Counted from the first letter of the stretch, positions 34,401-60,167 are shown. The stretch: 64,000 nucleotides of DNA from Aplysia californica (GCF_000002075.1 NW_004797290.1:2322123-2386122), one strand, 5' to 3'. Notes: a model not told the origin generated them from the letters alone. Translations and numbers: made by a program.

Positions 34401-37400
34401 CATTGGGATGCGGACATCTTTTCATGATGTAGACATTTCTTTGTGTACATGTTTTAAATATGAAGAATATGCGTGTTTTAGAAATTTTTTTAGACCTGAA
34501 TACTTGTTTGCCATGTATGTGTTTCGCTATGTGTGTGTTTGCTAGGCTGTATATATAAACCAATACCGGTGCCTACAAACCGCTCACCTATGTTTGAATT
34601 GACCCATTTTATGAGAGTTTTGTATGAGTAGGGTCTCCATTAATTAAGTTGTAAGACTGACAGTGGTACTTTTGTGGATTTGATAGTTGGCATAGCCAAG
34701 TGAATGGTGTATTCTTAGGCCAAGTACAGTCGAAATAGTCAAAGACTGCCACCCATTGTTGAGTTTCTTTTAGTGTTTTTCACACTACTGATCCTGAGAT
34801 GGATGTGGTTCAGTACCTTTTCACCTCAGGTGATGCAAGGAAACCCCCCAAAAACGGAGGAGGTCACATGCATACATTGTGGTATGCCGATGGTATCTTG
34901 GCAGTTAAATATTGAAGAACAGCAGGTCTTCCCAGGCTGGCTGCTTGTGTAAAATTCTTTATTCCTTCTCAAAATGGTAAAAACTCTGGTCAGTTTGAAT
35001 AAGAGTGAGTTTCACTACTGGATGAAGAAAGATACTGTTTACTTTTCAAAGATCTATTTGGGGAATGAGGAAGGAGAAGAGAATGAACCTGATGGAAAAT
35101 GAAAACCTCGCTTAAAATCTTTTATTTTAGACCCTGTGGTGCTTGTAAATCTCAAAAGTGAATTTTTGTGTGGTTATAATTACGATTACAAATGACTTTT
35201 TGTCTGCAACTTAGACTGTTACATCTTTCTGTTTCAGATCCTAAATCAAAATTACGTGAATGGGCACATGACAGCGTAAGTGTCAGTATAGGTTCATAGG
35301 CGTTTTGAACTTTTCTAGCACGCACATTGGAAAATTGATGTGACCCAAAAATCTTTTGTAAATTACAAAGTTTTCTATGTAGATCTATGTATTTTACATA
35401 CGAAGAATATCAATGTACAGGAAAAAGTTCAGGATTTGAAAATCTATTTGTGAGGCCGCACGTTGGAATCAGGCTCTCGTCAAAATAATCAAAGTGAAGA
35501 AACTTGAATTTTTCCGCAGGTTTGTGAATTTTTATCAAATTTTTGTTTTTTGGCTCAACACCTTTCAAGCCAATTAAAGAACTCATTTCTGTGTGGATTT
35601 TTCTGAAAAGCGTTGATTAAAGGCACAAAAATGTAAATTTTCAGTAACTATGGACTATTAAGCTAAGGAAATAACATCTTTGGAGGCCATTTTCTCACTA
35701 ATTTTACCTCTGAAAAAAGGTGACCCCCCCTCCTTCTTTCGCATATATCTCAACTTATATTCAAGATAAATGAATATTTTAAAAATCCAAATAAAGACAA
35801 GTGAACAAGTTTTAAGATGACTCCAATAACTCTACATGCCCAAAAATTGACGAGAGCCTGATTCCACCACGCTGCCTCACATTTGCTTTGTGTGTGTTCC
35901 TCTTGTATGTGTTTCACTATGTGCGTGTTTTGAGATGTGTGTGTTCACTTTGTATGTGTTAGATTGCATGTGTTTGCATTCTTGAGGCAGACTCAAACTT
36001 AAGTTTGAATTCTTATGTAGACACTGCCCACACCTGTCTGAAATACAACCCACATTCTCTCTGCAAGCTTCTAGAAAAGAAACTCTTTTCCACAGCATCG
36101 ACATCATGTTTACACCCTTTACTGACCCCTGGACTGGTGAAACCTTTCCTGTTTATACTCTTTCACAACAATGACTGCCCATTTTTTCAAATTCCTATGA
36201 ACAAAGCAACCTTCTAATGTTCACATTATTGTGTGCCTAATGGAAGTAAAAGTATTTATAAGTAAATTCTGACTTCTTTCTCGGGCTCTTAGAGACTTTC
36301 GTTACTAAAATGAACACAAGGCAACAGCTTAATGTCTCAGTTGAAGAAATGAAGAAATTTTGAATGAGGAGCAAGATGTATGCCCAGCAGTTTTAGATGG
36401 GTTGAATGCTAGCTCTGCATTTAAATTTTTGGTAGTATTGTTCGGGTTGAACAGGATAGGGTGAAGGTAGACAGGAACTGTCATCAAGCTGGCTTCGGCT
36501 GAAAAGAATGAATGACATTGCAGCATGAGATAACAACAGCAGCATGTTCTTGGATTTAAAAATATTTAGCTATACTTTGTGTCACTGTAACTGTCGGTGG
36601 GATTTGTGAGTTTTTTTAGAACAAATAGAACGACTTAAATTTTCTGAAACATAGTCAACAATTTGAAGACATTGTAATTTGTCCCTTCAGAAACCTAGTC
36701 ACCAATTTGAAGACATAGTAGTTTGTCTTTTGAAAAGGCTACTGTTGAGTAACAAGAGTGTCTATTTGGAAATGAATAATTGTTGCCCAGGAAGGATGCC
36801 AGTCAGACCGCACCCTCACCCATGTTTTATCTCCAACCACCAAGGAAAATGACCTTGTCTTGTGCATAGTTGATTTGTTGATTTGTTGGGAGTCCTAATG
36901 GTTTTATTCCCAAACCTTTCCATTATAAGCAGCGTCAGTAGGCCTGCACCATGAAATTGTCAACTATTATTTCCGACATAGCTGTATTAATTTGTAACTG
37001 TAGTAGAATCACTTTACGTTTGACTCTCAGTCAAAGCATGGGTTATTTCTTAAAGGTGATTTAGTTATCATTAATGTTTCTCACTAATTTAGTTTTAAAT
37101 AGGTAAGATAAGTAAGACAAATTAATGTGTCTAACGATGGATGTTTGCTGGGCACTCTGATTTAGTTTCTTTTTAGTCGCACTATTGTCTTGATACTGCT
37201 AGTTGCAACATGTTATTTGAAAAAATGCTAACTTACCTATAATTACAATTTAACGTGTCCCACTGAAGCCATGAATTTTTCACTCCTGTATCATCTCTGT
37301 TTGCAGTACCATATCCTGGAATCTGATAGCAAGCTACTACAAGGGTCTGCCATACTATAGGGATGGTTTGATGACTGCTGTGGAGCCCTGGTCTGGATAC

Positions 37401-40400
37401 TACGAGGTGGAAACGCCAATCTGGATTTCAGGTTAATATTCATGGTCAATGGAAACCTGAAGATTCCTCAGTATTGGGAAAAGACAGAAGGTTGTTGAAA
37501 TGCATTTGAACAAATAAAGAAAAGATACTGAGAAAATTGTGGACAGAAAGGGAAATAAATTGGACATCCAGAATGATAATCAGTCAAAAAGAGGTCAGAA
37601 CTTTTTCTTGGACATCTGTTAAATCACAAAAGGTTTAAATCTCACAGCATTGACATGAAAGTTTAAAGAGAGACTAGTAGAAAATTGTGCTATTATTACT
37701 GTCATATGTATAAACTTTTTAGGTGTACATAAAAAAAGATACATTTTCTTCATTCCAAAGAGATTATATCCCTTCTCAGACTGCTCATTTAGCTGGAATA
37801 TAAATGCAGGCATAGAGGGGCTGCTAAATGTGCAACAAATGTAATGGATTTCCTTTTTTTGTTCTCCAAAATTTCGTTATGCAGCCCACACCACCCAGTT
37901 TTCCAGCATTGGTTGGAAGTATCTGAGCCACGGACATGGTGTTGGTCACTTGCCAAAAGGCGGGTCCTATGTCAGCCTGACTGATCCAGCGGTGAAGCAG
38001 CTCACTATCGTTATAGAGACCATGGTAAGGCAAGAGCCAGAAAAGGTTATGATTTTCATGTATAAGAATTGTTTTTCAGCTCAAGAACCAATTTTTATTA
38101 CGAGTGATTTGTTCTTTATCCCTTGAGCATAAAACCATAAAATGCTTTGTTTTTAGCCAGTTGGGAGGGTAATTAATTGTGTTCTACTCATTTCTTGTTG
38201 GTTGGAATTATTTATTTTGGGGAAAATTTATGCGTCTGTGATTCTGTATTAGTGTATTTCAGTACTAATTTCAATTTGGTGTGATATTTGTTTCTCCAGA
38301 CTCATGATCATTCAAAGTGTATCCGTCCTGCCCTGCCCAAATACAGTGTGGCTCCTCAGAATGTGACTATAGTCTTAGCGGGAAATTTTGTAAGTGAACA
38401 AACTGACTCTATGTAGATCTGGTGTGTTTATTTTATAGTTTTTGTCTATTTTGATATTGCTATGATAATTTTTTGTTCTTTTGTTACGATTTTATTAGGC
38501 AGTTAACTGCATATCTTTCCTTTTGTTGAGAGAAAACTTCTTTTCCCTCTATTTACCGTCTGCATTTCTAAGTTAATGTGCAAGTCAACTGCATCGACCA
38601 TATAAAAGCAACCAGTGCAGATACCATAAATGAGAGATGTCGTGATGACTGTAATCACATGATTATTTGCTTGTTTGTTTACATAGTAAGGTTATATTTT
38701 CATACCTTCAGCTGGTATCAGAAGGCAAACATGATCCAACACCATGTTTAGGTTTTATTGGTGTATTTTAGAAGCTGAAGGAATGTCTTCATTAGCAGTC
38801 AAAATGCAAATACGTAACTGAAGTAAAGAGATAGGTCAAGACAATTTTTAATCTGTCTGTTTGAGGGTGAGTTTTTCCTGAAGCTAACCATGTTGTGTTG
38901 TAGTTGGCTGTTAATGCTTTACATCCAAACCGACACTATGTAGATAATTTATTTGTGGTCTGCTTTAACTCTGTCTATGATGGCCTACTTCGGCTGTTGG
39001 GGAAACGTCTCTTTAGAAAGATGGACATATCCAATAAAATTAAAATATGAAATAAAAATAAACTGCGTTTTATTGATCCCGGTGGGGAAAGTTGAATTAT
39101 AATGGCAAACATACATACATAAATACATAATTTGAAATACATACTTAAATACACAACATCACACCAATACAAAACAAGGTCACAAACATACCATTGCTGG
39201 TCACCACTGTGCAGCATCCTGATTTTGAGCTAGGTTTGTCGTGTCTTGCTCAAGGATACACCCCAGTGACCACCCTTCTGAACCGCATGTCACAGACACT
39301 TGCTCGACATTACTTTTGAGTGTGAACTCACTACTCGCTTAGCCACTGGAGCCCCCACTGCCATAACATTTTTTTGTGGGAGGCGAAGAATCTAACTATT
39401 CCCCCTCAGTAGCAGATGTTAGGGACTTTGCGATCGAGATCATTAATAAAGGATTTAGAAAAAACTGATATTGTGAGATGAAACGGAGAAATATAATTCT
39501 TGGCGCTTATGCTTTCGAAGAACTCATTCTTGGAGCAACAGTCCACTTTTTGATGTCCTTTCATGAAATTCTACCCATCAAAGGCATACAAATCTTACAA
39601 ATAACATTCACCGCACTTGCAAAGGTAGCATCAATTCCTCAAATGTACACATTATTGCTGGTCGTTGCACTGCAGCTTCCAGCATTTTTCGTCAGTGAGA
39701 GTTAAAATTAGTGTCTCTTTGACGAAAATACCCATCTCATAGCCATTGTCACTTGCCATTTCCAAACTTTTACATAATAATATAAGGGAATTCATTCACC
39801 AGTCTACCATGACCGTACAAATCTTTTGGTGCAATTTCAGAACAACATCTCACAAATGAATGTATGGTACAGCAAGCTGAAATTTGACGGTTCAAAAAGC
39901 ATCATGTTTCAGAAGCAGAATCCGCTTAAAGTAAGTATGAACCTTGTTGAATATTGTTGTCCTGAATTATGTTCATGCATTGGTTGAACTTATAACTACC
40001 TTGAAAGAAGAAAAGTATTGGCTGAACTTACATTGAGTATTGAGTGAATGGTAACTTGTGTCATCAGTTTGTGGTCAGGCTTCCTGTTTTTTTAGTTTGA
40101 GAATAAGATTCAGATACTATGGCTTTTCCTGAAATTCACAGCAACTTTTTTTGGTTCAATGGGTTTTTTTTTTCTTGAAATGTGCATTCCCATTCATGAA
40201 CAAGATGCCGGCATTAATTTAACATCTTAGACGAGTTGTAAAGTTCCCCTTCTAACTTGTTTCTCTTTTTTTTTTTTGGGGGGGGGGGGGGGGGCAAGAG
40301 GAGAAAGATTAAATTGTTGAGATCTAAAACTCTTTGATTGCGATATATCATTTAATAGAGTGACTTTTTAAAGTCAGAATCACCTAAATATAAACTCTAA

Positions 40401-43400
40401 ACTTTATTACAAGATTGTTTTAATTAAGATGGTGTGAGAGGTGTTTTTATTGTTCTTGTAGCCTGTCTGCTTTGGTGCTGTTTGTTAGTGAACCCCATAA
40501 ACTCATGTAAGTTTGGGAGTTTAAATCTTAGGAAGGATCTGAATTCTTTTGCCCTTCCTTAATTTTAACAATTGATTGCTTTTATTTCACGTGTAATTTA
40601 TCCTCCCACTCAAAGGTGTACTCAATTTGTTCTTTCCTCATGGAGTATTTTTCTTCTTGGTTCAGTGTTCTGATGTCAGACCAAGCATTTTGCGTTCATA
40701 ATAACCTTAGTTGTGTCTAGAAAGTTATTTTATTTCTCTTTAAAAATTCCATCACTACCCAGTCCTCTTTCATCCATCTGCGCGATTATCAATTTTGGCT
40801 GATGGGGTATATAATATAGCTGTATGAGTCTTCTCCACTTATCTGGGTCATGACTTCTGCTTTTTACAAAGAAGGTCCTCAACCTATATAATTCCATGAT
40901 CTCACCTGCAATGTGATAGGGCTGGTCTTCCTGGCATTCCTCTTTCCCTTTCATCAGAATAACGAAATCAAAGAAACCGATATTTTCCAGCCTGTTCAGT
41001 AATTTCTATCGATTTTTCTTTTTCTATCGATTTTTGTTTTGGATCAGCATTTTTTATATACATTTAAAAGCACATTTCTGTATGGATTTTACTTAAAAAA
41101 ACGTTAATCAAAGGCATAAAAAATATAAATTTGCAGTTTCCAAGGACACTCAAACTTAAAAAGTCTCCAGACTTTGGTAGCCATTTTCGTGGTTATTTTA
41201 CATCTGACATCTGGTGGCCCCCACCTTGATCTACAGAAAATATCTGTATGTCTAGTCAAGATAGATGTGTAATGTTTTTCATCAAAATTAAGCAAAAGAA
41301 TCAGATTTAAGATGATACCAATATCTTCATATGCCCAAATATTGACAAATGCCTGATCCAACTGTGGCTTGACATGTATGTGCATGTGTAAATGCATAAG
41401 TATCCGCACATTCATAATATTATTACATTAATGTCAACAGAACATTCAAAGTTAATTTCCGGACTTTATTTTTAGTTCAAAGACGGAAAAGCTCAAGTAA
41501 GTCTTGGCCTGGATGAAGTCATCACCTTGACAACCCTGAGCGCCGGTCAGAAGGGCCAGTACTCTGATCCACCAAAACCTATGCCATTCCCTCTGCCATA
41601 CAAGGATAATTTTGAAAGTGAGTTAGCTTTTGGGTTGTTTTTTTTACACTTTCTGTTTCATCAGTAGATATCTAGAGGGTGGCCCAGTAGACTTTTCACT
41701 GTTTTATTAACTGTTGAGCCTTGTTGGCTGAAAATAAGATGCATCTGACTTACATTTCTTTCCATAATCAGTTCAAATTAGAAACAAAATTATTTCGTAC
41801 ATAAAGAAATACATCCTGCACTTGTGTGAAGGTATTTGTAGGCGTAATATTGTAAAGGAAATATTTCTTTCCCTTTTCTAAAAGATCTTAACTATTTTAA
41901 TGGAAAGTGACATTTGTACCAAATTTTAATTTGTACAGTTTTGTACTCATTTGTCTTTGACATTGGACAGATGGTAGAGTGTTTTCTAGTTGGGATTCTG
42001 CATCTTAATCCTAATATGCTATAAGTATAGATCTATATGAGGTATCCACTTGATAGGAAGGGTGATGGTGATTTATCTGTTCTTTTAAATTTGCATAAAA
42101 ACAAAGGAATTTTGCTGGATTGCATTTATAAAAATTGTTTCTAAACTTGTTATGGTAAAAATAAAAAAAATGATTTCAAAGAGAATTTTTATTTTCCTCA
42201 CAATAATTGCTCTCAGCGTGACTTTTGATCTACCAGGTTGACCCGCTTCGCCTTTTGCCTTTTGCACTGCGGCCAGTCCATGCATTCCAAATATGTTTGC
42301 CAGTGACCCATTAGCGTCAGTAGCATTAATGATAATTCACCCTGACCTTTTTTTACTTTTTGGGCTGGTTCAGATGAATCGAACCACTTACACGTAGGCT
42401 TCGGAGCCACCCATGCAAAATTCAAAATTAGTTCCTACCAAACTAAAATAATGTTTAATGTGTCCCACAGCTCATATATGACCTTATGCAGTTGCGAGCG
42501 CCGTAAAGCACAAGCACTTACCAAAACAAATAAACAACAAACCTCACACATAGTTCAACCACAATGAGAGCAAGTGGTCTCAGCTTTTGCTCGGAGTAGT
42601 TCATTTACAAGTGCCTGATTGCAAAGTGTTTGGAATGTCAAAAATAATTTATGAATGACTAGCTATTGAAGTATTCTATAGAAGGATATACTGAAATGAA
42701 TGGTTGTGGTGTCGAGATCTTGCCTTAAACGGCTTGCACTTTGACTTCTTGATTTTTTTTTCCTTTTGGAATTCAATTTGTTCTATTTTTGTGCTACTTT
42801 CCTTTTTTTGCTTTTCCTTTTGTGCAATTTGTAACATTTATACTTGATTGCAATCCTTGTGAAGATATATTCCTTTAATTCAGTTTTGGTTAACTTCTAA
42901 AAATCTTTCTGACAATAGCTGTATGAATTGTCTACTGGGAACTTGATAAATCTAAAGATGGCAATTATTTGTTGGGTATCTGAGATGAACTGAGTTGTGT
43001 AAAAATCCAACATTTTTTCCTAATGGGCTTTTTTATACCTCACCTTTCACTATCTAATTATTGTCATAATAGTGAGTTTATTGGGGCAGTGCAGCTGCAA
43101 GTGGAATTTCAAAGCCATTGGGAAACGATAAGTGTCATCTTATCTGTTACATACACAAGCACTTTGAACTCTCTCTTTTTTCTTATATTTGAATTAGTGT
43201 GTTCCAAACAAAGTCATTGTTTTCAGTTTGCTTATTTTGAGAACTTTTTAATTTTCCGTAAAAAAAAAAAAAAAGTCACTTTTACCATTTCCTTAATTAT
43301 GGTTCTTTCTCTCGTTCACTTAATGGATTGCTTTTAGGCCCAATGATACCTAATGTCAGTGCCCGAAAAAGTTACATTTATAGGGATGTTTATATATTAT

Positions 43401-46400
43401 TTCTTTTTTGGTAAGAATATAGAGTCTCTCATCCCTTTAAAAAAATTATTTTTTCACTGTGAACCAAAAAATATTGAGAAAAAAACAACAACAAATAAAA
43501 CAAACTGCTTTTAATGTAAAAGATTATCCACCCTCTGCAATGTTTTTGAGATTGTCCTAAGCGTTTCACCTGCATAAACAGTAGCATCATAGGTTTTAGA
43601 AATTTAAATCATTGTAAAGGATATTGACTGTTCAACAAGTGGTGTTACTTAATCTAATGCTCTCGATGGTAGTTTCTCATGGGAAACAAAGTGTAGAACA
43701 TTGTGAGATTTACTGAACCAGAACATTGTGATACAATACTGAACCATCTTCTTTTCTGACATTCAGTATTGATTCAAGATTAGAACAAAATCTCTTTGTA
43801 AATAGATAACACGTTTACCACCTGATTTGAATTTCCTGGCTCTGTTCCAGATCCAGCAATGAAGAATTTGAGAGCCGTATTTACATACAATTCACAAATA
43901 GCTGTCCCACTTATTTTATTTTGTTTTTTGTTTCATAATCTGATGTATTGCATGTAACTGATTTGGTTATATTATGAAAAAGTTGGCAAGCCTGAAATAA
44001 ATATATGGGCTCTTCCACGGTAACTGATGAGACATTTGGACTATACTTTCTTACAATGATAACACTATAATTCATATTCAATTATTTTATTCCAACTTTA
44101 AATGATAAGAACATTTAAAAGACATATGTCCCGTCAGTTACTGAAACTAAACACGTCACAGAATTTGCAAAAAGTACTTTTTTTCAAATGACTGTATTTA
44201 ATATGATACTTAATGTGTCTTTCAAATTTTCTGATCATTTAATGTTGAAATAAATTAATTGATAATGATTTACAGTGTTATCATTGTAAGAAAGTATAGT
44301 CCAAATGTCCGGTCATTTACCGTGGAATAGCCCATACGCAGGTTCCGCCCCACCCTTTGTCCCTTAATGCCCTAATTTTCTCCATCAACCTCTCAGGTTA
44401 CTCATTGTACAAAGAGCCTGCCAATCTTGCCCCTCAAACTGGGACTTACGAAACCTTGATCTCTAATGGCAACCGCTTTGCTAGGCAAATGCAACTTGTT
44501 GAGCCTGTCCGCTGGTGCAAAGCAGATGGAATCGATAAGTCTATCAGCGTCATTGGCAATCAGAGCTGGTAAGGAAAGCTTATCAGGACAGCTATAATCT
44601 CTCTTCGCACATTTTGTTGTGCATCTGATGCTTTGAAAATTTCGCTTCAATTTGTCAGCACATGAGTTTGTTGGACACCTTTGTTTGATGCTGAACTATA
44701 GAAGTACAGAATATGTGTCAACTTGATGAATGATTTAATTTGCTTCCCAGGATTTTGATTCAGAGGAATTTCTTCTGAAAGCTAAAAATACATTTTATTT
44801 AGAATATGGTGACCATAAGAGGATATTCTGTTTTCTAAATGTGAATGTGATTCTCTGACTTCACATTAGATTTTGATCTCACTCCTTCTCTGTTCTGTTT
44901 AATTCTCTGCTATGGGTTTCATTCAGAGGCCAAGTCCTTGCATACAGAATTCAGTTGTTCTTTCATTTCTGTGATGCACAAGGTGTTTTGGTTTGCCTCA
45001 CCAGATATATGTATGGGTTTCAGTTTTCCTTCTCTGCGTTTACATTTGCTGCATTCTGCACCAGTTTTTACTTCGATGTATTTGCATTTATTATCAACAC
45101 CTTGCCTTTTTCTTACTCTCTAACACACAAGCATGTTTACCTGCGCACATACAATTTTGGATAAAATATTCACATTTTGTCAAGTTTGATCCACGAATTT
45201 TGCTCCTGTCTTAAAGAAATTGACTGAAAACCCGAGTAATTAGTAAGTAGTCTATAGTGTTCTCATATTGTTTCCTCTAACTTTATGTGAAAAAGATAGG
45301 GTGTCAAATTTCTATTAAAATCTAAAAAAAATAGATGGTTTTGGCACAGTGCATCACAACTTATACAAGGAATAAGGGCAATGGAGATTGAACATCAATG
45401 TTGTGGTCAGGAAGAGGATGTGGTAATAATCTGTATTATGATGTTATGAGCTCTTGTCGTCAGACGTAGGTGTGGTTGTTGGTACTAAAACATTTGGCGA
45501 AGTGGATAGTAAACATGTGAAGAATTTTTTAGGAGCAAAAATGTTGTGGATTAAGCTTCTTTCTGTGTTGTTTATTTTTTCAAGTATAAACCACACCTTT
45601 TTATTTGTAACGACTCATGTTTTTTGTGCATTTTTTCCTTATAAATTTCACCAACCAAATCCTTTTTTTTTTTGGTAAGTGTTTTACGGCGCTCGCAACT
45701 GCATAAGGTCATATGAGTGCGCGGAACACATAAAACGTTTTCAGTTAGTAGAGGTTTTTCACCCTTGTCCGAGAGGGCTAGGTGTAGATCTTTCCTACTA
45801 GGAGATCAGGGGTGTGTCTGAAAGATAGCAGTAAGAAGGAGCCAAGGAGTAGCAGTAGAAAGGCTACAGAAAGTCAGAAGCCCAGAGGAGGGAGAAAAGG
45901 AGGTGAAGGGATGGGGGCAGAACATGCAGATGACAAAACATTGCTAGAGAGCAGGAAAGAAGGTGAAAGGAGACAAGTTTAGAGAAGAAAATGTTTCCCT
46001 CGCTACCCGGATTCGAACCTGGGACCTTTGAATGAGAGGCAAACACCTTAACCTCTAGGCCAAGAGAGCCCCCAACCAAATCCTTGCTTTTGCAGCCTAA
46101 GACAATATGCACCATACCGCATCAGTGCCATCTGGTGCAAAGTCACTGATTCCTTACTAATCCAAAACAAATAAGCTCTATTATGACAACCCTTAGTTTC
46201 TTGTTTTGAACTCCTGAGCTGCAGTAGTTGGATTGGCAAGATCGGTTTGGTTCGGTTCGGTCGTTGGGGTGAGCCAGATTTTCCTCCACTGAGGGAAGAA
46301 ACGTACTATCGTGGCACACACTGAATGAAACCAACGATGACCTTCAAGAACAAACGTGTCTGTTTTCAAGGCTGCAAGTCGGGCGGTTGGTTTTAGGCAG

Positions 46401-49400
46401 GGGTTTATTTATAGTGTACGCTGACGCCGCCAGAAACCGAACCGATCCTCCAATGGGCACTGCCTATTATATGCAGATCAAAAGGATATCTACAAACTTC
46501 CTTATGACGCGGCTCATGTTGAATTAGTTGCATAAAATGGGACACCAAACTCAATAGAAATTAGTGATCCAAGAAATCAACATACACTTTTTATAGATAA
46601 GATGGACTGGCTGCGGTTTCCGTAGATTTTTTTTATCGGAGTAAATACTGCTCTAAGCAAGCTGAATTGACGTGCCATATACTAAGAGTTGAAGGGGTTG
46701 CACATTGTGGTGATGTATTGTTGTTAAATTGGTGGAAATGGGTCACAGGGATCTAGCCTACCTGTGGACCAAAATTAAGGGTCACCCTTAAATTTGTATT
46801 TTGATAAAACAACTGCGTTGTTTTGCTTTTATGTGAAATAAAAAATGGTAAATTCAAATTGCAATGTATACAAGTAAAGAACAATAATTTTTTTTCTAAG
46901 ACAGGGGTTTGGGTGGGGGGGGGGGGGGGAGGTGGTTAGTGTTTTTCGGCGCTTGCAACTGCATAAGGTCATATGAGCGCGCGGGACACATTAAACATTT
47001 TCAGTTGGTAGGAAATTTTGAATTTTGTGCGGGTGGCGGCCGAAGCCTGCTCTTATTGATTTTAGTCCACCAAGAGAGCTTTAATGTGCGCACCCTTCAC
47101 ACGGGACCTCCGAGATTTTTCGCCCTTGTCCGAGAAGGCTACGTGTAGATCTCTCTTACCAGAAGATCAGGGGTGTGGCTGAAAGACAGCTGTGTAAGAA
47201 GGAGCTAAGGAGTAGCAGTAGAAAGGCTGCAGAAAGAGTCAGGAGCCCAGAGGAGGGGGCAAAGGAGGTGAGGGGGTGGGGGCAGAACTGAGAAAGTGGA
47301 GACGAAAGCAGACGACAGAACATTGCTAGAGAGCAGGAAAGGGTTTGCATCTGGTACACAACATATTATATATCACTCTTAGTTTCACAGTACACATACA
47401 GTTGAATGAAGATGTTTAAAAAATGTTCTCAATTGCTAATACAACTAGATTATGTTCCTTACTCATTTTGTGGGCTGTTTTGACATTCTCACCTAGGGTA
47501 GAGTTGAGACAGGATTTTATCACTCTGCTCACTCTGTTGACATTATGGTCACCAGAAAGCACATTGTAACTCTGGCAATATTGAAACAAGTAGGAAGAAC
47601 AAGCTGAACAAAGTGGCCGCCCTCAGCTAATGCTCATCGCAGTAGTGGAAAATGCTATAAATCCAAAGTTCGAAAGGCATTCTCTAAGCTGAAGGTTTGA
47701 GAAAATGTCTGAAGAAGAAACAATGGTTGTAGAACTGTCAATGCTTTCTGTGTGTCCCCAGCTTACTTGGAGTTTGTGGAGCCAAATATGCTGACTCCTC
47801 AGGTGGGCTCTTTAGAGATAGGGAAATCCCAGAATGTGTCTCATAAGCAGGTTGCTCGCCAGACGGTCCAAGCACCTCCGTTAAAGTGGTGCCCTTTCAC
47901 TCTGAGTGTCCCATTCGCTCTTGTGGGTGACAATAATTGGTAAGCATTCTTTCCAGATTACTGAATTAACTCAGCTTGTGTTTCATATTGATAGCTGCAG
48001 TGATATAGAAGGGTGTGAATTTGGTTACATGTAATCGCATTGGAGTTTGATGTTGAGAATCCAAATGGAGATCTTTCCTGGCACTTGTCTAAATATGAAA
48101 AGAATAGGGTCTAAATATGAAAAGAATAGGAAAAGGACTCTTTGCCTCTCCGCACCTCTCTTACTCCCCCCCCCCCCCCCCCCACCATGATGCCACTTAT
48201 GATTAGAGTAGAGACTTAAAACATTTTATAGTTTTAGAGAAAACACTTGTGCTGGGATAGAAACCACCTACGGTGGGTCGTTGGCGGATGCTCTGGTAGG
48301 ATTTTCTCTTTCTTTCCTATCAAACATCTATCGCCTTTTTTTTCTTTTTTTGTTACTCTTTTGTAACACCTCTATAATCTTCAACACTAAAATGACCTAA
48401 TTGTGTTGCAAGTGCTGTTAAACGCTTACTTATACTAAGACATTAACATAAAACTAAAACACAGGCGAGGAAGCAAATGATAAAGTGGGAAAAAATATAA
48501 TTCAGAAATTATGTTGTTTATTTGCACCTTGCTTTTCAAAGTTAAACTTTAGTCTCACAGAGGGTTGGAGAAAGGGTTTTATAATTTGTAACTAGTTCCA
48601 TGGTTTTATTTACAAAATGAAATGAGAAATCATATTGAATTTTCAGAGTGACACAGTCTTGTTTGAAATCTGTACTATCTCAGATTCTGATCAAGATTGT
48701 TTGATGAAATAGGAAAGGAAACTACAGTACTCAGCAAATATGCTACAGACTATCAGTCTAGACTGAGAAAATCATGAAATTAGTATTCTGATAAATTTAC
48801 CTCACCGCCTCGCTCATGTTGCATTGCTAAGCCTGATGTTTTAGTTGGGAAAATAAATGCTCTACATACCCTTGAAATTACCTACTTTGTGTCTTGTAGT
48901 GTTTTTGTTTTCATGTATGCATGAACATCATATTTCTTTTTGTTTTGAGTGGTTTCAGGGTGCTGCTGGTAGGCTGTATTTCTTTTCTCTCCAGCTATTA
49001 TTTCCTGCTTGTCTGTCTTGTTCATTGCTCATCCTTATTGAATGATAATTTTTTGTGTCTATGTGCTTCTTCTTACCCAAGCTCGAAATTTTGTCATTGA
49101 CATCCATAGTTCTGCATCGCCTTGAATTTCTTTGCATTCTGTTGCAAATGAGTTTATTCTCGAGTTTTTGTACAAATTCATTAGCCGTGGAACTTCAGAT
49201 TATTCCCTTGGAAGTTTTGGGCAATTAATTAATTTTGTCATCTGATGTTTGCCTTGGAAAACTACATTTTTTCTTCAGTAATTGGGCTGATAAAAATACT
49301 GTTCTCATCTCTTTTTCCTTCTTCTCCTCCTCCTCTTTTTTCTTCCATCTTCTTTTTCGGGATCTCAAGTACAAATGACAGAAAGCTCTTCAATCCATAG

Positions 49401-50327: not shown

Positions 50328-53300
50328 TCTCTCTCTCTCTCCCTCTCTTACTTTTTACATTGTAACGAGCCTTTTTCCCCTGCTATAACCGGTTGGGCTC
50401 CGATGAGGCCCTGTTATTGCCGATAACTTTTAATAGAGACAAAGAGTAGGAAAAAACGGGGTTTTTAAAAATCCCTGTTATTACCGGATCCCTGTTATTA
50501 CCGGGCCTGTTATATATGGTTTCCACTGTAAATCATTTAGCCTTATTTTTTAAAATATCTCATTAGAAAGAGTACAGCATTTTTCTTTACACATTTATGT
50601 TTTGCATTTTTAGAAAACTTTTGTTTACTCAGCACCTGTGTGTGTAGTTGCAGATACATGCAAAAAAGCATGAGTTTAATTCCTGCTTGGCGAATATATT
50701 CTGCCCGTCTCTTAAATTATCAAAAATTTGTTAAAAGAGATGAAAAGAACATATTATCTAATCATTGCTAAGTCTTTAAAGTGCGTAATTCCTTCCCATG
50801 TAATATTCATCATGTATGATTCAATGAGGAGTTTTCTTCTTTTTTTTTTTCCGTTGAATTACTAAATATTATGCAATCAGTTTTGTTTTCAGTATGGATT
50901 AAAATTTAGTTTTATGTGCACACCATTGTATTCTTGTGTTTTTAGGTAGCACACATTCTAAACTTTGTCTGACTGACTTTGTTCCAGGAAAGACATTTAT
51001 GTGGAAATAGACTTCCAGCTGTCCACTGTCAATGGCTCGAAGGGTGCATTTGTGGCAGCTCGTGTGGATCAGGGAGGATGCGTGGCGTTCCTCGCTCATG
51101 GCATTTTCTTCTTTGCCTTTCCTGATAAATTTATCTTGGCCAATGACCTAGGTGAGCCCTATGAGTTTGAACTGTGGGGAAACTGCTGTTGTCTATCAGG
51201 TTGTTGTGGCTCTGGTGAATTAAGTTGGCTACAGTTTTTTGTTGACCTGAAGAGGTTAAAAGCCAATGCCTATTGCCAGCTAAATTTTTAAAAAATATTT
51301 AATGAGGGTTTTCTGCGTGTCCTTTAACAAAACAGCAAGAGGAATGATGGAGAAGAGATGATAAGTGCCTTTGTTCTTGATTCTTGGGGACCATAGAAGT
51401 TTCCAACAAAATAAAGACGTTCTTTGCCTGATGAATGAGATGACCTACTTTTGAATGTATAGATAAAGTGGTATTCTGTTCTGTGTATTTTGCATTGCTC
51501 TCAGTGATTCTAAAAATTTCTGCCAATAGGGGACTGGCATCTGGGATGTAGTGATTAAGCACTTTGCTGTTGCATACAGGAGACCCATGTTCGATTCCCA
51601 ACAGCGGAGAAAATTTTTATCGAGTATCTCAGTCTTTATGCTGGGTTATTGTATCCCTCGCAGCCCAGGTTGGCCTTGACTGGCTAATTAATCTAACTTG
51701 TGTCAATGTGGGGCGCATAACTCTAAAACACTTACACTCAAATTTAAATTTAAGATGCCCACCACAGAAAATTTAATTAAAGGGTAGGATGTGATAGCTT
51801 CACATGGATGTATAAACCATGCAGAGTTTATGCTTATTGTGTTCAGATTTTGAAAAACGAAGTGTATACAGACCCGGTAACCGGGAACAAAGTCATGAAG
51901 TATACAGACCCGGTAGGGGAACTCTTTTGTGNNNNNNNNNNNNNNNNNNNNNNNNNNNNNNNNNNNNNNNNNNNNNNNNNNNNNNNNNNNNNNNNNNNNN
52001 NNNNNNNNNNNNNNNNNNNNNNNNNNNNNNNNNNNNNNNNNNNNNNNNNNNNNNNNNNNNNNNNNNNNNNNNNNNNNNNNNNNNNNNNNNNNNNNNNNNN
52101 NNNNNNNNNNNNNNNNNNNNNNNNNNNNNNNNNNNNNNNNNNNNNNNNNNNNNNNNNNNNNNNNNNNNNNNNNNNNNNNNNNNNNNNNNNNNNNNNNNNN
52201 NNNNNNNNNNNNNNNNNNNNNNNNNNNNNNNNNNNNNNNNNNNNNNNNNNNNNNNNNNNNNNNNNNNNNNNNNNNNNNNNNNNNNNNNNNNNNNNNNNNN
52301 NNNNNNNNNNNNNNNNNNNNNNNNNNNNNNNNNNNNNNNNNNNNNNNNNNNNNNNNNNNNNNNNNNNNNNNNNNNNNNNNNNNNNNNNNNNNNNNNNNNN
52401 NNNNNNNNNNNNNNNNNNNNNNNNNNNNNNNNNNNNNNNNNNNNNNNNNNNNNNNNNNNNNNNNNNNNNNNNNNNNNNNNNNNNNNNNNNNNNNNNNNNN
52501 NNNNNNNNNNNNNNNNNNNNNNNNNNNNNNNNNNNNNNNNNNNNNNNNNNNNNNNNNNNNNNNNNNNNNNNNNNNNNNNNNNNNNNNNNNNNNNNNNNNN
52601 NNNNNNNNNNNNNNNNNNNNNNNNNNNNNNNNNNNNNNNNNNNNNNNNNNNNNNNNNNNNNNNNNNNNNNNNNNNNNNNNNNNNNNNNNNNNNNNNNNNN
52701 NNNNNNNNNNNNNNNNNNNNNNNNNNNNNNNNNNNNNNNNNNNNNNNNNNNNNNNNNNNNNNNNNNNNNNNNNNNNNNNNNNNNNNNNNNNNNNNNNNNN
52801 NNNNNNNNNNNNNNNNNNNNNNNNNNNNNNNTAGATCTTGATCTAGACGTAGGCCACAGATCTAGAAGAACCTAATCTAGGTCTACCCTGAGCCAAGAGG
52901 GCGCAGACACTCCGAAATCACAAAAGAGTTCCCCTACCGGGGCTGTATACTTTGTGACTTTGTTCCCGGTTACCGGGTCTGTATACACTTCCTTTGAAAA
53001 ATCCTTTTACTTTCTGTAGTGTACTCTGTACTCAACCCTTTTTCTTCTTTCAGTTTGAATTTGGATTTCGTCTGTCAGTTCTAAGCAGTATTAGTATTAC
53101 AAGACTTTATATTGCATTTTATTGCAGCAAGAGTAACTGTACTTAAAGAGGGCCCATTGTCGTTCAAGCTGGGAGAGTGGCATAAACTCTCTTTACTCAT
53201 TCAGGTAAGTAAATTCTAGTGTTTTTTGGGTCAAAGGTTGGACTCCATTTTTGTAAAAGATTGTTATTGCACATAAATTCTTTACCTTTGATAACACAAT

Positions 53301-55405
53301 GTATCAGATATAGTCAGATATTGAAAATAACAGCTATTGCAGATTGTTATTGCAGATAGATTCTCTACTTTTGATTACACAATGTGTCAGATATTGAAAG
53401 TTATAACCATTTTTGATAGTTATTGCGGGATTTTAATTTTCCTCATTTTGTCAGTGCTCTTTACTTTTTAGAATTTATCTATGCCACATACTGTAGTCTC
53501 TTGAATCTTTCTACTGCTACTCCTTGGCTCCTTACTGCTGTCTTTCAGCCACACCCCTGATCTTCTGGTAGAAAGATCTACAACTAGCCTTCTCGGACAA
53601 GGGCGAAAAAATCTCGGAAGTCCCGTGTGCAAGTTGCACATGTTAAAGATCCCTTGGTGGTCCAAAATAGATAACAGTAGGCTTCGGCCGCCACCTGGGC
53701 GAAATTCACAATTTCCTACCAACTAAAAATGTTTGATGTGTCTGCACACTCATATAACTTTATGCAGTTGCGAGCGCCGTAAAACACTTAAACCCCCCCC
53801 CTGAAAAAAAGAAGTCTCTTGAATCCTGTGTGCCACAGGCGTAGGTGAAAAATGTTTGCTTTTTTTTATGATCCTCAAAAGAGGCGAAGGAGAGACTTTT
53901 CATGCTCAGTAAAATTGATGCTGTTTCCTGTGTTTCCAGAATATTATCTCATGAGCTTTATAAAATGGTTTGTTTCATGACAGTAGTAGCCTATAAACTT
54001 GCATTAATCAGTTTCATGTTTTTGTGTCAAGCAAAATTTTGTTATACGGTCCAACCTACTCAACCACCTCTCCAAGATAGTCAATCACCTGTAAAGTAAA
54101 AAAGCCCCCCCCCCCATTTAGTTTTTTTTTTCTTTATTATTATGACACTGTCCAATTAAACCACCCGTCTAAGATGAATGTCTTCTCCTTGACAATGGGT
54201 GGTCATCTTTGTCACGTTTGACTATACGTTGGTCAGTTGAATGTTCTAAGCCTGGAATTTTTTTAATTGCCGTTTCTTTTTCTTCAGTATTGTGTGCATG
54301 TGCTCAAGAAATATTTTTCTGAAATTTAATTTTTAAATTCTAAATACTGAAAATGAAAAAAGCTAGAAAAAATAAACAAGGTAGAGGTATAGTTGTTAGA
54401 GGAATGAAACTTTTCTCTCTCTTGTAAAATTTTGCTTTCTGGCGGGGGGGAAGAACGACTGATTGTATTGTAAGATCTTTTATGCACAGAACCAATTTAT
54501 CTATACATGTATAGAATCTGTCTCCGTCGTTTTATGCAAGAAAAATTCTGAAATTATGCAAACTGGGCCCAAAAATGTGAAATTATGCGATTCTGTTAAT
54601 TTTAACAAAGAATGTTAAAGGAAAATAATCAGAAATTATGCAAAAAATGATCAAATTTTGCTAAATTATTCGGGGTGCATAAAACCACGGGGACAGTAGA
54701 ATGTAAGATCATACTTTGGGTGACAGGCAGCCAGGTGCCTTTTAATTTTCAAACTATCAGGAGTGACTTTCACTCAGTTTTGAGTTGGAATTTATTTTGA
54801 ATTTTGACTTAATTGCCTGCTTTCTTTTATTTTAGAACTGCCAAGCAATCTTTAGAATGAGAAACTTCCACAAGGGACTTTGGAAATTTCGATTTCTTAT
54901 CTGTGAAGACTAGGTGCTAGATTTTACCTATTCTAGGGTCAAAAGGTGTAAAAAACCCGAGAAAAACCCTGACGCTGGTGGGGATCGAATTCCAGACCTC
55001 TGGGTTGACAAGCAAACATCATATCTTTTGAGGCACCGAGCCTTCTTTAGGATTAAGTCAACCATTACATTAACATAAAACAAGTTTTATTCTTTTCGAG
55101 GCATCCCTGTCTTGTTTCTGCTTCCGTACAGTGAATGTTGACAGTTTTTATAGGCTTATATTATAATATGATTTATTTCCTTATATTTCCATACTTCCTA
55201 GAATGGAACCATCACAGGAGCTTTTGATGGCAAGACTGTCTGTACTGTTGGGATGCCCAGACGCCCCGCTAATGGTTTTGCCGCTATAGGAACTGATACT
55301 TTCGGGCTGGCCGATTTCGACAATTTGTATTTAGCCTCTGCAGCTGAGGGCCAGAAGAGGATGTCATATTTCTTTAGAGATTCTGTCTCCATTTCCCATA
55401 ACTGA
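13254..55405 (+). CDS. GALC: Galactocerebrosidase (galactosylceramidase, GH59), whole multi-exon gene model; 18 coding exons, about 691 aa (exon 15a) or 693 aa (exon 15b) when one copy of exons 3-13 is used
   Basis: Hand-spliced GT-AG exons join in frame (sum 2076 nt with 15a). They give GALC hallmark motifs [84 protein letters not shown] and [14 protein letters not shown]. The N-terminus is hydrophobic and signal-peptide-like. Confidence 0.96.
13785..13853 (+). CDS. GALC: GALC exon 2 ([23 protein letters not shown])
   Basis: ctag|GCA...AAG|gtaggc, 69 nt, phase 0/0. Confidence 0.95.
14551..15425. mobile_element. Tc1/mariner (pogo-like) non-autonomous element; copy 2 at 28259-29135
   Basis: TA|cagtcgaacctg...caggtttgactg|TA. 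Confidence 0.85.
15599..15662 (+). CDS. GALC: GALC exon 3, copy 1 ([21 protein letters not shown])
   Basis: gcag|CCA...ACTG|gtaagt, 64 nt. Confidence 0.95.
16175..16263 (+). CDS. GALC: GALC exon 4, copy 1 ([30 protein letters not shown])
   Basis: tcag|AT...AAA|gtatgt, 89 nt. Confidence 0.95.
16884..17389 (+). mobile_element. tRNA-derived SINE, about 500 bp (family A); copy 2 at 30594-31099
   Basis: tRNA-like head, pyrimidine-rich body and the shared tail ccttatgcagttgc..gc.c.gtaaaaca. Confidence 0.88.
17437..17601 (+). CDS. GALC: GALC exon 5, copy 1 ([19 protein letters not shown]...HDLNIDFVG)
   Basis: acag|AGA...GGG|gtgagt, 165 nt. Confidence 0.95.
18090..18285 (-). mobile_element. 3' fragment of an I-group (Nimb/Ingi-like) LINE; also present in the duplicated blocks
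   Basis: Minus strand reads [15 protein letters not shown]...[27 protein letters not shown], a degenerate C-terminal zinc-knuckle region. Confidence 0.6.
18594..18632 (+). CDS. GALC: GALC exon 6, copy 1 ([13 protein letters not shown]; catalytic acid/base Glu)
   Basis: ctag|ATT...AAG|gtacgg, 39 nt, phase 0/0. Confidence 0.95.
19159..19676 (-). mobile_element. Full-length SINE family A with 14-bp TSD; copy 2 at about 32874-33391
   Basis: Pol III A-box-like ggcctagaggttaag and B box GGTTCGAATCC. TSD aagctttttggttt at 19145-19158 and 19677-19690. Confidence 0.93.
19872..19999 (+). CDS. GALC: GALC exon 7, copy 1 ([20 protein letters not shown]...VHAIG)
   Basis: tcag|AGA...AGG|gtacac, 128 nt. 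Confidence 0.93.
20490..20607 (+). CDS. GALC: GALC exon 8, copy 1 (CHYPGT...LWSSEDYST...GGCWAR; nucleophile Glu)
   Basis: tcag|A...AGG|gtaata, 118 nt. Confidence 0.95.
21523..21560 (+). CDS. GALC: GALC exon 9, copy 1 ([13 protein letters not shown])
   Basis: tcag|ATC...GC|gtaagt, 38 nt. Confidence 0.95.
21734..22167. mobile_element. MITE with about 35-bp TIRs; copy 2 at 35449-35881, diverged relative at about 41000-41375
   Basis: tgtgaggccgcacgttggaatcaggctctcgtcaa...ttgacgagagcctgattccaccacgctgcctcaca. Confidence 0.8.
23593..23717 (+). CDS. GALC: GALC exon 10, copy 1 ([11 protein letters not shown]...[16 protein letters not shown])
   Basis: gcag|T...CAG|gttagt, 125 nt. Confidence 0.95.
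24171..24310 (+). CDS. GALC: GALC exon 11, copy 1 ([14 protein letters not shown]...GGSYVSLTD...LTIVIETM)
   Basis: gcag|CC...ATG|gtaagg, 140 nt. Confidence 0.95.
24587..24676 (+). CDS. GALC: GALC exon 12, copy 1 ([30 protein letters not shown])
   Basis: ccag|ACT...TTT|gtaagt, 90 nt. Confidence 0.95.
25330..25642 (-). mobile_element. tRNA-derived SINE with CORE/V-like central motif and L2-like tail; copy 2 at about 39043-39355
   Basis: Minus strand ggctccagtggctaagcg..., gtgtatccttgagcaagacac and tttccccaccgggatcaataaa. Confidence 0.55.
26128..26217 (+). CDS. GALC: GALC exon 13, copy 1 ([30 protein letters not shown])
   Basis: tcag|AAC...AAA|gtaagt, 90 nt. Confidence 0.93.
26562..28003 (+). 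repeat. Third copy of about 17765-19207 (intron 5, exon 6, intron 6)
   Basis: Starts at a shared ttt-poly(G) run and ends in a SINE tail at the 100-N gap (28004-28103). Confidence 0.95.
27390..27428 (+). CDS. GALC: Extra (third) copy of GALC exon 6 within a short duplicated block
   Basis: Identical to 18594-18632 with intact splice sites. It lies in block 26562-28003, which may be an assembly artefact. Confidence 0.6.
29309..29372 (+). CDS. GALC: GALC exon 3, copy 2
   Basis: Same as 15599-15662. Confidence 0.85.
29885..29973 (+). CDS. GALC: GALC exon 4, copy 2
   Basis: Same as 16175-16263. Confidence 0.85.
31147..31311 (+). CDS. GALC: GALC exon 5, copy 2
   Basis: As 17437-17601 but AAT>AGT (N>S) at 31235. 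Confidence 0.85.
32309..32347 (+). CDS. GALC: GALC exon 6, copy 2
   Basis: Same as 18594-18632. Confidence 0.85.
33587..33714 (+). CDS. GALC: GALC exon 7, copy 2
   Basis: Same as 19872-19999. Confidence 0.85.
34205..34322 (+). CDS. GALC: GALC exon 8, copy 2
   Basis: Same as 20490-20607. Confidence 0.85.
35238..35275 (+). CDS. GALC: GALC exon 9, copy 2
   Basis: Same as 21523-21560. Confidence 0.85.
37307..37431 (+). CDS. GALC: GALC exon 10, copy 2
   Basis: As 23593-23717 but CAC>TAC (H>Y) at 37398; donor is gttaat rather than gttagt. Confidence 0.85.
37885..38024 (+). CDS. GALC: GALC exon 11, copy 2
   Basis: Same as 24171-24310. Confidence 0.85.
38300..38389 (+). CDS. GALC: GALC exon 12, copy 2
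   Basis: Same as 24587-24676. Confidence 0.85.
39841..39930 (+). CDS. GALC: GALC exon 13, copy 2
   Basis: Same as 26128-26217. Confidence 0.85.
41476..41617 (+). CDS. GALC: GALC exon 14 ([47 protein letters not shown])
   Basis: ttag|TTC...GAAA|gtgagt, 142 nt, ends phase 1. Confidence 0.94.
44004..44336. mobile_element. Foldback MITE, almost wholly palindromic
   Basis: tatgggctcttccacggtaa.tga...gacatttggactatactttcttacaatgataacact is inverted at about 44270-44336, and the arms continue inward. Confidence 0.88.
44397..44568 (+). CDS. GALC: GALC exon 15a, lectin domain ([19 protein letters not shown]...[30 protein letters not shown])
   Basis: tcag|GT...TG|gtaagg, 172 nt, phase 1/2. Confidence 0.93.
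45665..46073 (-). mobile_element. SINE family A, internally deleted, with TSD
   Basis: Head and tail present. TSD aaccaaatcctt at 45653-45664 and 46074-46085. Confidence 0.88.
46220..46465. mobile_element. Small degenerate MITE
   Basis: gcagt...attgg..gatcggtttggtt versus aaccgaaccgatc..ccaat...actgc. Confidence 0.5.
46938..47341 (-). mobile_element. SINE family A, 5'-truncated
   Basis: Matches 19169-19562 and lacks the tRNA head. Confidence 0.88.
47762..47939 (+). CDS. GALC: GALC exon 15b, paralogous alternative to 15a ([19 protein letters not shown]...[29 protein letters not shown])
   Basis: ccag|CT...TG|gtaagc, 178 nt, phase 1/2, no stops. Aligns end to end with exon 15a. Confidence 0.88.
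49715..50528 (-). mobile_element. Tigger/pogo internally deleted element with CENP-B-type HTH remnant; contains a (CT)n tract at about 50294-50348
   Basis: TA|cagtggaaacc...ggtttccactg|TA. Minus strand reads [18 protein letters not shown]...[18 protein letters not shown]...RKKMR...VDQALL. Confidence 0.88.
50988..51151 (+). CDS. GALC: GALC exon 16 (KDIYVEIDF...[13 protein letters not shown]...GIFFFAF...LANDL)
   Basis: ccag|G...TAG|gtgagc, 164 nt, phase 2/1. Confidence 0.93.
51530..51730 (+). mobile_element. Degenerate tRNA-derived SINE (different family)
   Basis: gggatgtagtgattaagcac...gacccatgttcgattccc is A/B-box-like. It is not an intact cloverleaf. Confidence 0.5.
51858..52992. mobile_element. 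Mutator/MULE-like element, interior N-masked
   Basis: TIRs of at least 73 bp (gaagtgtatacagacccggtaaccgggaacaaagtca...). 9-bp TSD tttgaaaaa at 51849-51857 and 52993-53001. Confidence 0.85.
53128..53204 (+). CDS. GALC: GALC exon 17 ([26 protein letters not shown])
   Basis: gcag|CA...CAG|gtaagt, 77 nt, phase 1/0. Confidence 0.9.
53508..53812 (+). mobile_element. SINE family A, 5'-truncated, with 13-bp TSD
   Basis: TSD agtctcttgaatc at 53495-53507 and 53813-53825. Confidence 0.9.
54046..54224. mobile_element. Short degenerate pogo-like MITE
   Basis: ta|cggtccaacct...gacaatgggtggtc...gtttgacta|ta resembles the ends of 14551-15425. Confidence 0.5.
55202..55405 (+). CDS. GALC: GALC terminal exon 18 ([11 protein letters not shown]...[21 protein letters not shown]...SHN*)
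   Basis: ctag|AAT..., stop TGA at 55403-55405. Confidence 0.93.
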   Translation, partial: NGTITGAFDGKTVCTVGMPRRPANGFAAIGTDTFGLADFDNLYLASAAEGQKRMSYFFRDSVSISHN

Positions 55406-59686: not shown

Positions 59687-60167
59687 GGGGTCTAGAGGTT
59701 ATAACATACTGTGTTCACCTCACACTCAGTGCCCTGAGTTCGAAACCTGACAGCGATGGGAACATTTTCTTCTCAAAAAAGTTCTCCTTTCACTACTTTT
59801 CTGCTCTCTTACCATGTTCTGTCGTCTGCTTTCGTCTTCACTTTCTGGTCCCCACCCTCCTCTCGGCTCCTGGCTCTTTCTTCATTCGTTCTACTGTTGC
59901 TGTCTTTCAGCCACACCCCAGATCTTAGGTCTTAGAAAAAGTAAGATCTAACCCCTCTAGCTTCCTCGGATCAGGGCGAAACATCTCGGGGGCTTAAGTT
60001 GCGCACGTTAAAATCGATTGGTGGTCCAAAATCGATATAAAAGAGCGAGTAGGCTTCAGCTGCCATACGGCAACATTCAAAATTCATTTCCCGAACCAAA
60101 CTGAAAAAGTTTTATGATTTCTGTGCCCTCATGATCTTATGTAGTTGCGAGTGCCGTAAAACACTTA
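59687..60167 (+). mobile_element. SINE family A, older diverged copy
   Basis: Head gtgttcacctcacac...gagttcgaaacc is tRNA-Val-like; same body and tail as the family. Confidence 0.85.

Follow-up and report, generated by a model that had tools for sequence, protein, structure and literature searches.

A probable mutually exclusive exon pair at the active-site loop of an Aplysia californica galactocerebrosidase gene

Can a single galactocerebrosidase gene supply two forms of its enzyme by choosing between two versions of one exon? The question is raised by a 64,000-nucleotide stretch of Aplysia californica DNA (GCF_000002075.1, NW_004797290.1:2322123-2386122), here called the window, which carries a gene for the GH59 enzyme galactocerebrosidase (GALC). 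Between exons 14 and 16 of this gene lie two exons, 15a and 15b, that the original prediction, made from the sequence alone, had taken for divergent tandem copies spliced in a mutually exclusive manner. Exclusive use of such a pair is annotated in other molluscs and in an Aplysia paralog, gene B; for the window gene, RefSeq holds 15a only. We conclude that 15a and 15b are probably the Aplysia copy of an ancient mutually exclusive exon pair in molluscan GALC, with 15b, on this reading, still spliced into the mRNA of the window gene.

Two versions of one exon in a GALC gene

The region around the pair consists of the following features, with exon numbers taken over from the original prediction and coordinates checked:

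41476-41617, + strand: exon 14, the constitutive upstream exon; 100% match to residues 440-487 of XP_012942715.1 (P0125)
44397-44568, + strand: exon 15a, the a-type version of the first lectin-domain exon, 172 nucleotides; present in the RefSeq protein
44569-47761, + strand: intron between 15a and 15b, 3193 nucleotides; two interspersed-repeat copies, third exon copy absent
47762-47939, + strand: exon 15b, the b-type version, 178 nucleotides; present in zero annotated Aplysia proteins
50988-51151, + strand: exon 16, the constitutive downstream exon; in frame only after exactly one of 15a and 15b

On re-reading, the predicted borders and lengths of 15a and 15b were exact. The two exons are homologous neighbours of similar length (172 versus 178 nucleotides) placed between the same two constitutive exons. 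Each is preceded by a pyrimidine tract and CAG and ends in TG/gtaag, as had been claimed; each is open in the third frame only, and their phases are identical. Exon 14 ends, as read from the sequence, in GAAA/gtgagt and carries one base of a split codon across the junction, completing a serine codon (AGT) when 15a follows and a threonine codon (ACT) when 15b does. At the other end, the TG that closes either version joins the first G of exon 16 to form TGG (Trp).

Splicing that departs from a single choice is penalized by the reading frame. A message that includes both versions meets a stop 28 codons into 15b, and one that skips both terminates 8 codons into exon 16. Enzyme can therefore come only from mRNAs that include a single version, and the frame rule set out in the original prediction is thereby upheld. 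In the mechanism we propose, the spliceosome would join exon 14 to one version and then that version to exon 16, and out-of-frame products of double or zero inclusion would be removed by nonsense-mediated decay. A search for a third copy, or a decayed remnant of one, between window exons 14 and 16 found none.

Two kinds of repeat lie close to the pair. A foldback element (44004-44336), built from two 124-nucleotide arms that are 87% complementary, ends 60 nucleotides upstream of the 15a acceptor; as RNA it scores -157 kcal/mol (z -17), and the genome contains hundreds of copies of its repeat family. Within the intron between 15a and 15b, the copies at about 45673-45923 and 46933-47288 represent one interspersed repeat, which recurs in the window at about 16850-17190, 19300-19550, 53470-53720 and 59730-59950.

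The gene that holds the pair is a GH59 galactocerebrosidase by its domains and catalytic residues, with predicted enzymatic activity. Its product, RefSeq XP_012942715.1 (P0125), is a single isoform of 691 amino acids that contains 15a and the domains PF02057, PF17387 and PF21708, corresponding to a TIM barrel, a beta-sandwich and a C-terminal lectin domain. Its alignment with mouse GALC spans residues 28-670 (E 6e-210), and the catalytic glutamate motifs, WNER and SSED, align with mouse E182 and E258. Across 118 homologs, E262 is invariant, E187 nearly so, and W526 nearly invariant. Vertebrate GALC, as seen in the mouse structures 3ZR5 and 4CCC, shares with the Aplysia gene the three-domain GH59 architecture, the catalytic glutamate pair and the pocket tryptophan.

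Are 15a and 15b truly versions of one exon? Both match positions 2-46 of the Pfam profile PF21708 (Glyco_hydro_59_C), 15a with E 7e-6 and 15b with E 3e-4, and their peptides show 35% identity over 43 amino acids (BLASTP, E 7e-7). End to end, 17 of 60 residues are identical (28.3%), which reproduces the count made by eye in the original prediction. The DNA of the two exons aligns no better than shuffled sequence (z 1.2), and the duplication is therefore old.

One could argue instead that just one exon is real, the other being a chance open frame or an artefact of assembly or haplotype. Assembly errors do exist in the region, since a near-identical tandem duplication flanked by gaps lies just upstream in the window. 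However, a haplotype copy is contradicted by the 28% end-to-end identity and the unalignable DNA, both exons match the same PF21708 positions, and closer relatives exist for each one separately, in other species and in the Aplysia paralog. The one-exon explanation, to which we give practically no credence, is refuted by the orthologous a and b exons that the genomes of Physella and Haliotis carry in the same order; the earlier statement that the pair is no haplotype artefact was correct.

The upstream duplication spans about 12 kb (window 14396-26577 and 28104-40293), is 99.4-99.6% identical between copies and covers middle GALC exons. A run of 162 N occupies the same relative place in both copies (20201-20362 and 33916-34077), a gap of 100 N (28004-28103) sits at their junction, and 26562-28003 also matches 31481-32922. 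Because the RefSeq protein uses each exon once, this duplication looks like an assembly artefact.

The same pair in other molluscs and in Aplysia paralogs

Among RefSeq gene models, isoform pairs with an a and a b version, identical outside this exon, occur in Physella acuta, Haliotis cracherodii, H. rufescens, Pomacea canaliculata, Babylonia areolata, Littorina saxatilis (three versions) and Crassostrea gigas. Examples are:

Physella acuta: XP_059176870.1 versus XP_059176853.1 (RefSeq)
Haliotis cracherodii: XP_071090483.1 versus XP_071090482.1 (RefSeq)
Pomacea canaliculata: XP_025093998.1 versus isoform X2, P0036 (RefSeq)
Crassostrea gigas: XP_034327074.1 versus XP_034327075.1 (RefSeq)

These pairs swap the same exon as the Aplysia window gene, with the same a and b signatures and matching phases, but have both forms annotated where the window gene has the a form only. 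The Physella and Haliotis loci repeat the arrangement of the window, with a and then b between exons 14 and 16; the a-to-b intron, 3.2 kb long in the Aplysia window, is shorter in both, at about 0.4 kb (Physella) and 2.2 kb (Haliotis). The isoform pairs date the exclusive pair back to the common ancestor of gastropods and bivalves or earlier.

The exon peptides were also placed on an outgroup-rooted tree of 60 columns, of which the main splits alone count. Exon 15a falls within an a-type clade of 31 rows (support 95/91) that includes gastropods, bivalves, octopus and chiton, and support is 99/85 for the heterobranch b-type clade that contains 15b. On this rooting the b-type rows branch below the a-type clade. 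A phmmer search with 15b against cluster representatives returned distant fragments only (36-53% identity), the close b-types lying in clusters represented by other isoforms. A word-index protein search with 15a, whose length window leaves out full-length proteins, gave no candidate.

The Aplysia genome (927 Mb in 4332 contigs) holds four further GALC genes: A, B and C in tandem on one contig, and one on another. Gene B carries the exon in three tandem versions, ordered c (190 nucleotides), a (172) and b (175), with equal phases and canonical splice sites, and its RefSeq isoforms X1 (XP_005089503.1) and X2 (XP_005089504.1) differ by c versus a alone. Gene B thus resembles the window gene in its a, b order and has annotated mutually exclusive use; it differs in its extra upstream c version and in that the annotated pair is c/a, with the b exon unannotated. 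Across the two genes, 15a is 58% identical to the a exon of gene B and 15b is 69% identical to its b exon, whereas the a and b versions inside either gene are about 30% alike. The a/b duplication therefore predates the split between the window gene and gene B.

Versions have also been lost or, it seems, divided among genes. In tandem genes A and C the a exon is the sole version left, and b has vanished without a recognisable trace. In Biomphalaria glabrata, one locus (L024, protein P0055) has the b exon alone between exons 14 and 16, and a b-only enzyme is therefore viable. An a-type protein (P0073) comes from a separate neighbouring gene in that chromosome-scale record, and the two versions appear to be divided between these Biomphalaria paralogs. 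Stylommatophoran snails show the same a/b division among paralogs at the protein level.

Three further observations concern the distribution of versions. Gene A carries a truncated c-type exon remnant (L013:3836-3922), 86% identical over the first 29 codons. A sacoglossan-like metagenome contig of 76 kb (L001) has one exon copy only within 10 kb either side, and no pair. Isoform X3 of Lingula, considered as a pair outside the molluscs, has a different exon version but reads into a stop and was not counted.

Probable present use of exon 15b

Is 15b still alive in the window gene? Both exon versions are under purifying selection. Between 15b and the b exon of gene B, the proportion of nonsynonymous differences (pN) is 0.197 and that of synonymous differences (pS) 0.521 (Fisher p 1.5e-4; pN/pS about 0.27-0.38); between 15a and the a exon of gene B, the values are 0.279 and 0.512 (p 0.008). 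Nucleotide similarity between the two genes ends at the exon borders, and the flanking introns are unalignable. The b exon of Lymnaea is 68.5% identical to 15b, and the whole proteins are 66% identical. A tree restricted to the constant part places the window gene as sister to two b-form proteins (SH-aLRT, the Shimodaira-Hasegawa-like approximate likelihood ratio test, 99; quick search), both from intron-free transcript contigs, one of 2638 nucleotides from Logan and one of 2359 nucleotides from a Joint Genome Institute (JGI) metatranscriptome. The nearest relatives outside Aplysia carry b-form mRNAs. Taken together with the b exon kept in other molluscs, the orthologous pair in relatives and the place of 15b in the heterobranch b clade, pN below pS for both exons bears out the original prediction of an old duplication under selection.

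Several findings weigh against present use. The RefSeq isoform of the window gene carries 15a, and neither Aplysia b exon is found in an annotated protein. The end branch of 15b is 0.37 long, against 0.13 for the b exon of gene B (a exons: 0.33 and 0.42). Because the pN/pS ratio is a sum over two lineages, it is also compatible with use having been lost recently. In three poly(A) RNA sequencing runs neither 15a nor 15b was covered by any read, and the gene went undetected. These runs, of about 13-15 million 101-nucleotide reads each, were mapped to 42100-48099 together with contigs of a fourth run; reads covered repeats only (about 45500-46100 and 46900-47500), on both strands at a depth of about 100-200, and derive from many diverged genomic copies. 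Because the gene itself was undetected in the runs, RNA depth says nothing either way on 15b.

One alternative is a 15b that is a relic, left unspliced and so far undisabled in a gene locked on 15a, with the b function residing in another paralog. That only the 15a form is in RefSeq and that the end branch of 15b is about three times that of the gene B b exon both favour this explanation, and version loss after gene duplication is known in the family, from the a-only Aplysia genes A and C and from the a/b split in Biomphalaria. Yet the reading frame, pyrimidine tract, CAG acceptor and GTAAG donor of 15b are all intact, and its pN/pS is lower than expected had one lineage drifted for long. The identity between 15b and its Lymnaea counterpart equals the level of the constitutive exons, the closest relatives express the b form, and the true losses of b, in genes A and C, have left nothing recognisable. 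We consider a relic unlikely, and present use of 15b in the window gene has a good chance of being real.

Both exons could also be used without forming a regulated switch, inclusion of 15b yielding mainly unproductive transcripts that tune the level of expression. The early stop after double inclusion and the absence of an Aplysia b-form protein from the annotation are what this arrangement would produce. It does not, however, account for purifying selection on the amino-acid sequence of 15b, for a b-type signature conserved from bivalves to heterobranchs, or for whole genes that use b constitutively. Selection, signature and b-only genes therefore indicate a translated, functional b-form, and we regard tuning by unproductive transcripts as very improbable beside a mutually exclusive pair.

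The swapped loop and comparison with known systems

What would the choice between 15a and 15b change in the enzyme? This exon supplies the first part of the C-terminal lectin domain, made up of three short strands, an active-site loop, a short helix and a strand. As had been predicted, the tryptophan of RW-C in 15a and of KW-C in 15b aligns with mouse W524 (ITW; offset checked on E182 and W135), a residue that shapes the GALC substrate pocket (PMC4445328). In the complex of GALC with saposin A (SapA), the interface is centred on the active site, and SapA Q24, mutation of which blocks binding, hydrogen-bonds GALC R520 and T523 (PMC5764952). At the aligned counterparts of R520 and T523, 15a has E and R and 15b has P and K.

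Around these differences, the two versions share a common scaffold (E, Q.G, E, RQ, P..WC, G...W). Among about 200 molluscan and other GALC proteins, the a-type signature is PV.W-C.A(D/E)..NKS, polar and with a frequent glycosylation sequon, and the b-type signature is PPI.W-CP..L.FPI, proline-rich and hydrophobic. Vertebrates are not known to have more than one version of this exon, and in mouse GALC the segment after the tryptophan is closer to the a type than to the b type.

AlphaFold models were compared for the a-form of the window gene (P0125; predicted local distance difference test score, pLDDT, 91.9) and for a natural b-form ortholog (P0084; pLDDT 92.4) standing in for the window gene's b-form. 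Both have the same local layout, with three strands, the tryptophan loop, a short helix at 528-532 and a strand. From this shared layout, the exon swap is predicted to keep the fold and to change the surface chemistry next to the pocket entrance.

A natural variant of the loop occurs in one sacoglossan GALC paralog (P0105, P0109, P0121, P0153, P0002 and locus L001:10001-10270), in which the otherwise nearly invariant pocket tryptophan is replaced by serine (PIE-S-C). A tryptophan 2-3 residues further on (CPW or CTW) may represent the pocket residue in a shifted position.

The swap might alter the enzyme's preference for its substrate or for its saposin/activator. A broader proposal is that the mollusc splice switch lets one GALC gene make two enzymes differing in glycolipid substrate or saposin partner, and that some lineages later hard-wired the two forms as separate genes; we offer it tentatively, as a possibility with the odds somewhat against it. 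If true, it would provide a natural experiment on how the specificity of a lysosomal glycosidase is set.

GALC is the Krabbe-disease enzyme, and how saposin A enters into its choice of lipid substrates is under active study. A natural swap of the W524 loop together with saposin-contacting residues points to a candidate specificity-tuning surface, and it supplies two ready-made loop variants to compare, plus lineages that carry the variants as separate genes. For annotation, the Aplysia models of both the window gene and gene B probably miss a b isoform. In a full-text literature search, no paper turned up that describes mutually exclusive exons of this kind in galactocerebrosidase. The original prediction that the arrangement is undescribed for GALC hence stands for the literature searched but fails for databases, where RefSeq isoform pairs already exist. 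That alternative exons and gene duplicates are interchangeable is a known principle of which this is a clean case; the mechanism is not new, and what gives the case its value is the enzyme and loop concerned. The interest is moderate because of which loop is swapped.

Classical clusters of tandemly duplicated, mutually exclusive exons are those of tropomyosin and the voltage-gated channel genes. There, homologous exons lie in tandem with similar length and phase, and the one chosen for each transcript sets a defined structural element. By every structural criterion the GALC pair is a standard mutually exclusive exon cluster, and isoforms that use one version or the other are annotated in its relatives and in the Aplysia paralog. 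Unlike the classical clusters, Aplysia GALC, with a frame penalty as the one barrier shown, swaps the active-site, activator-facing loop of a lysosomal glycosidase.

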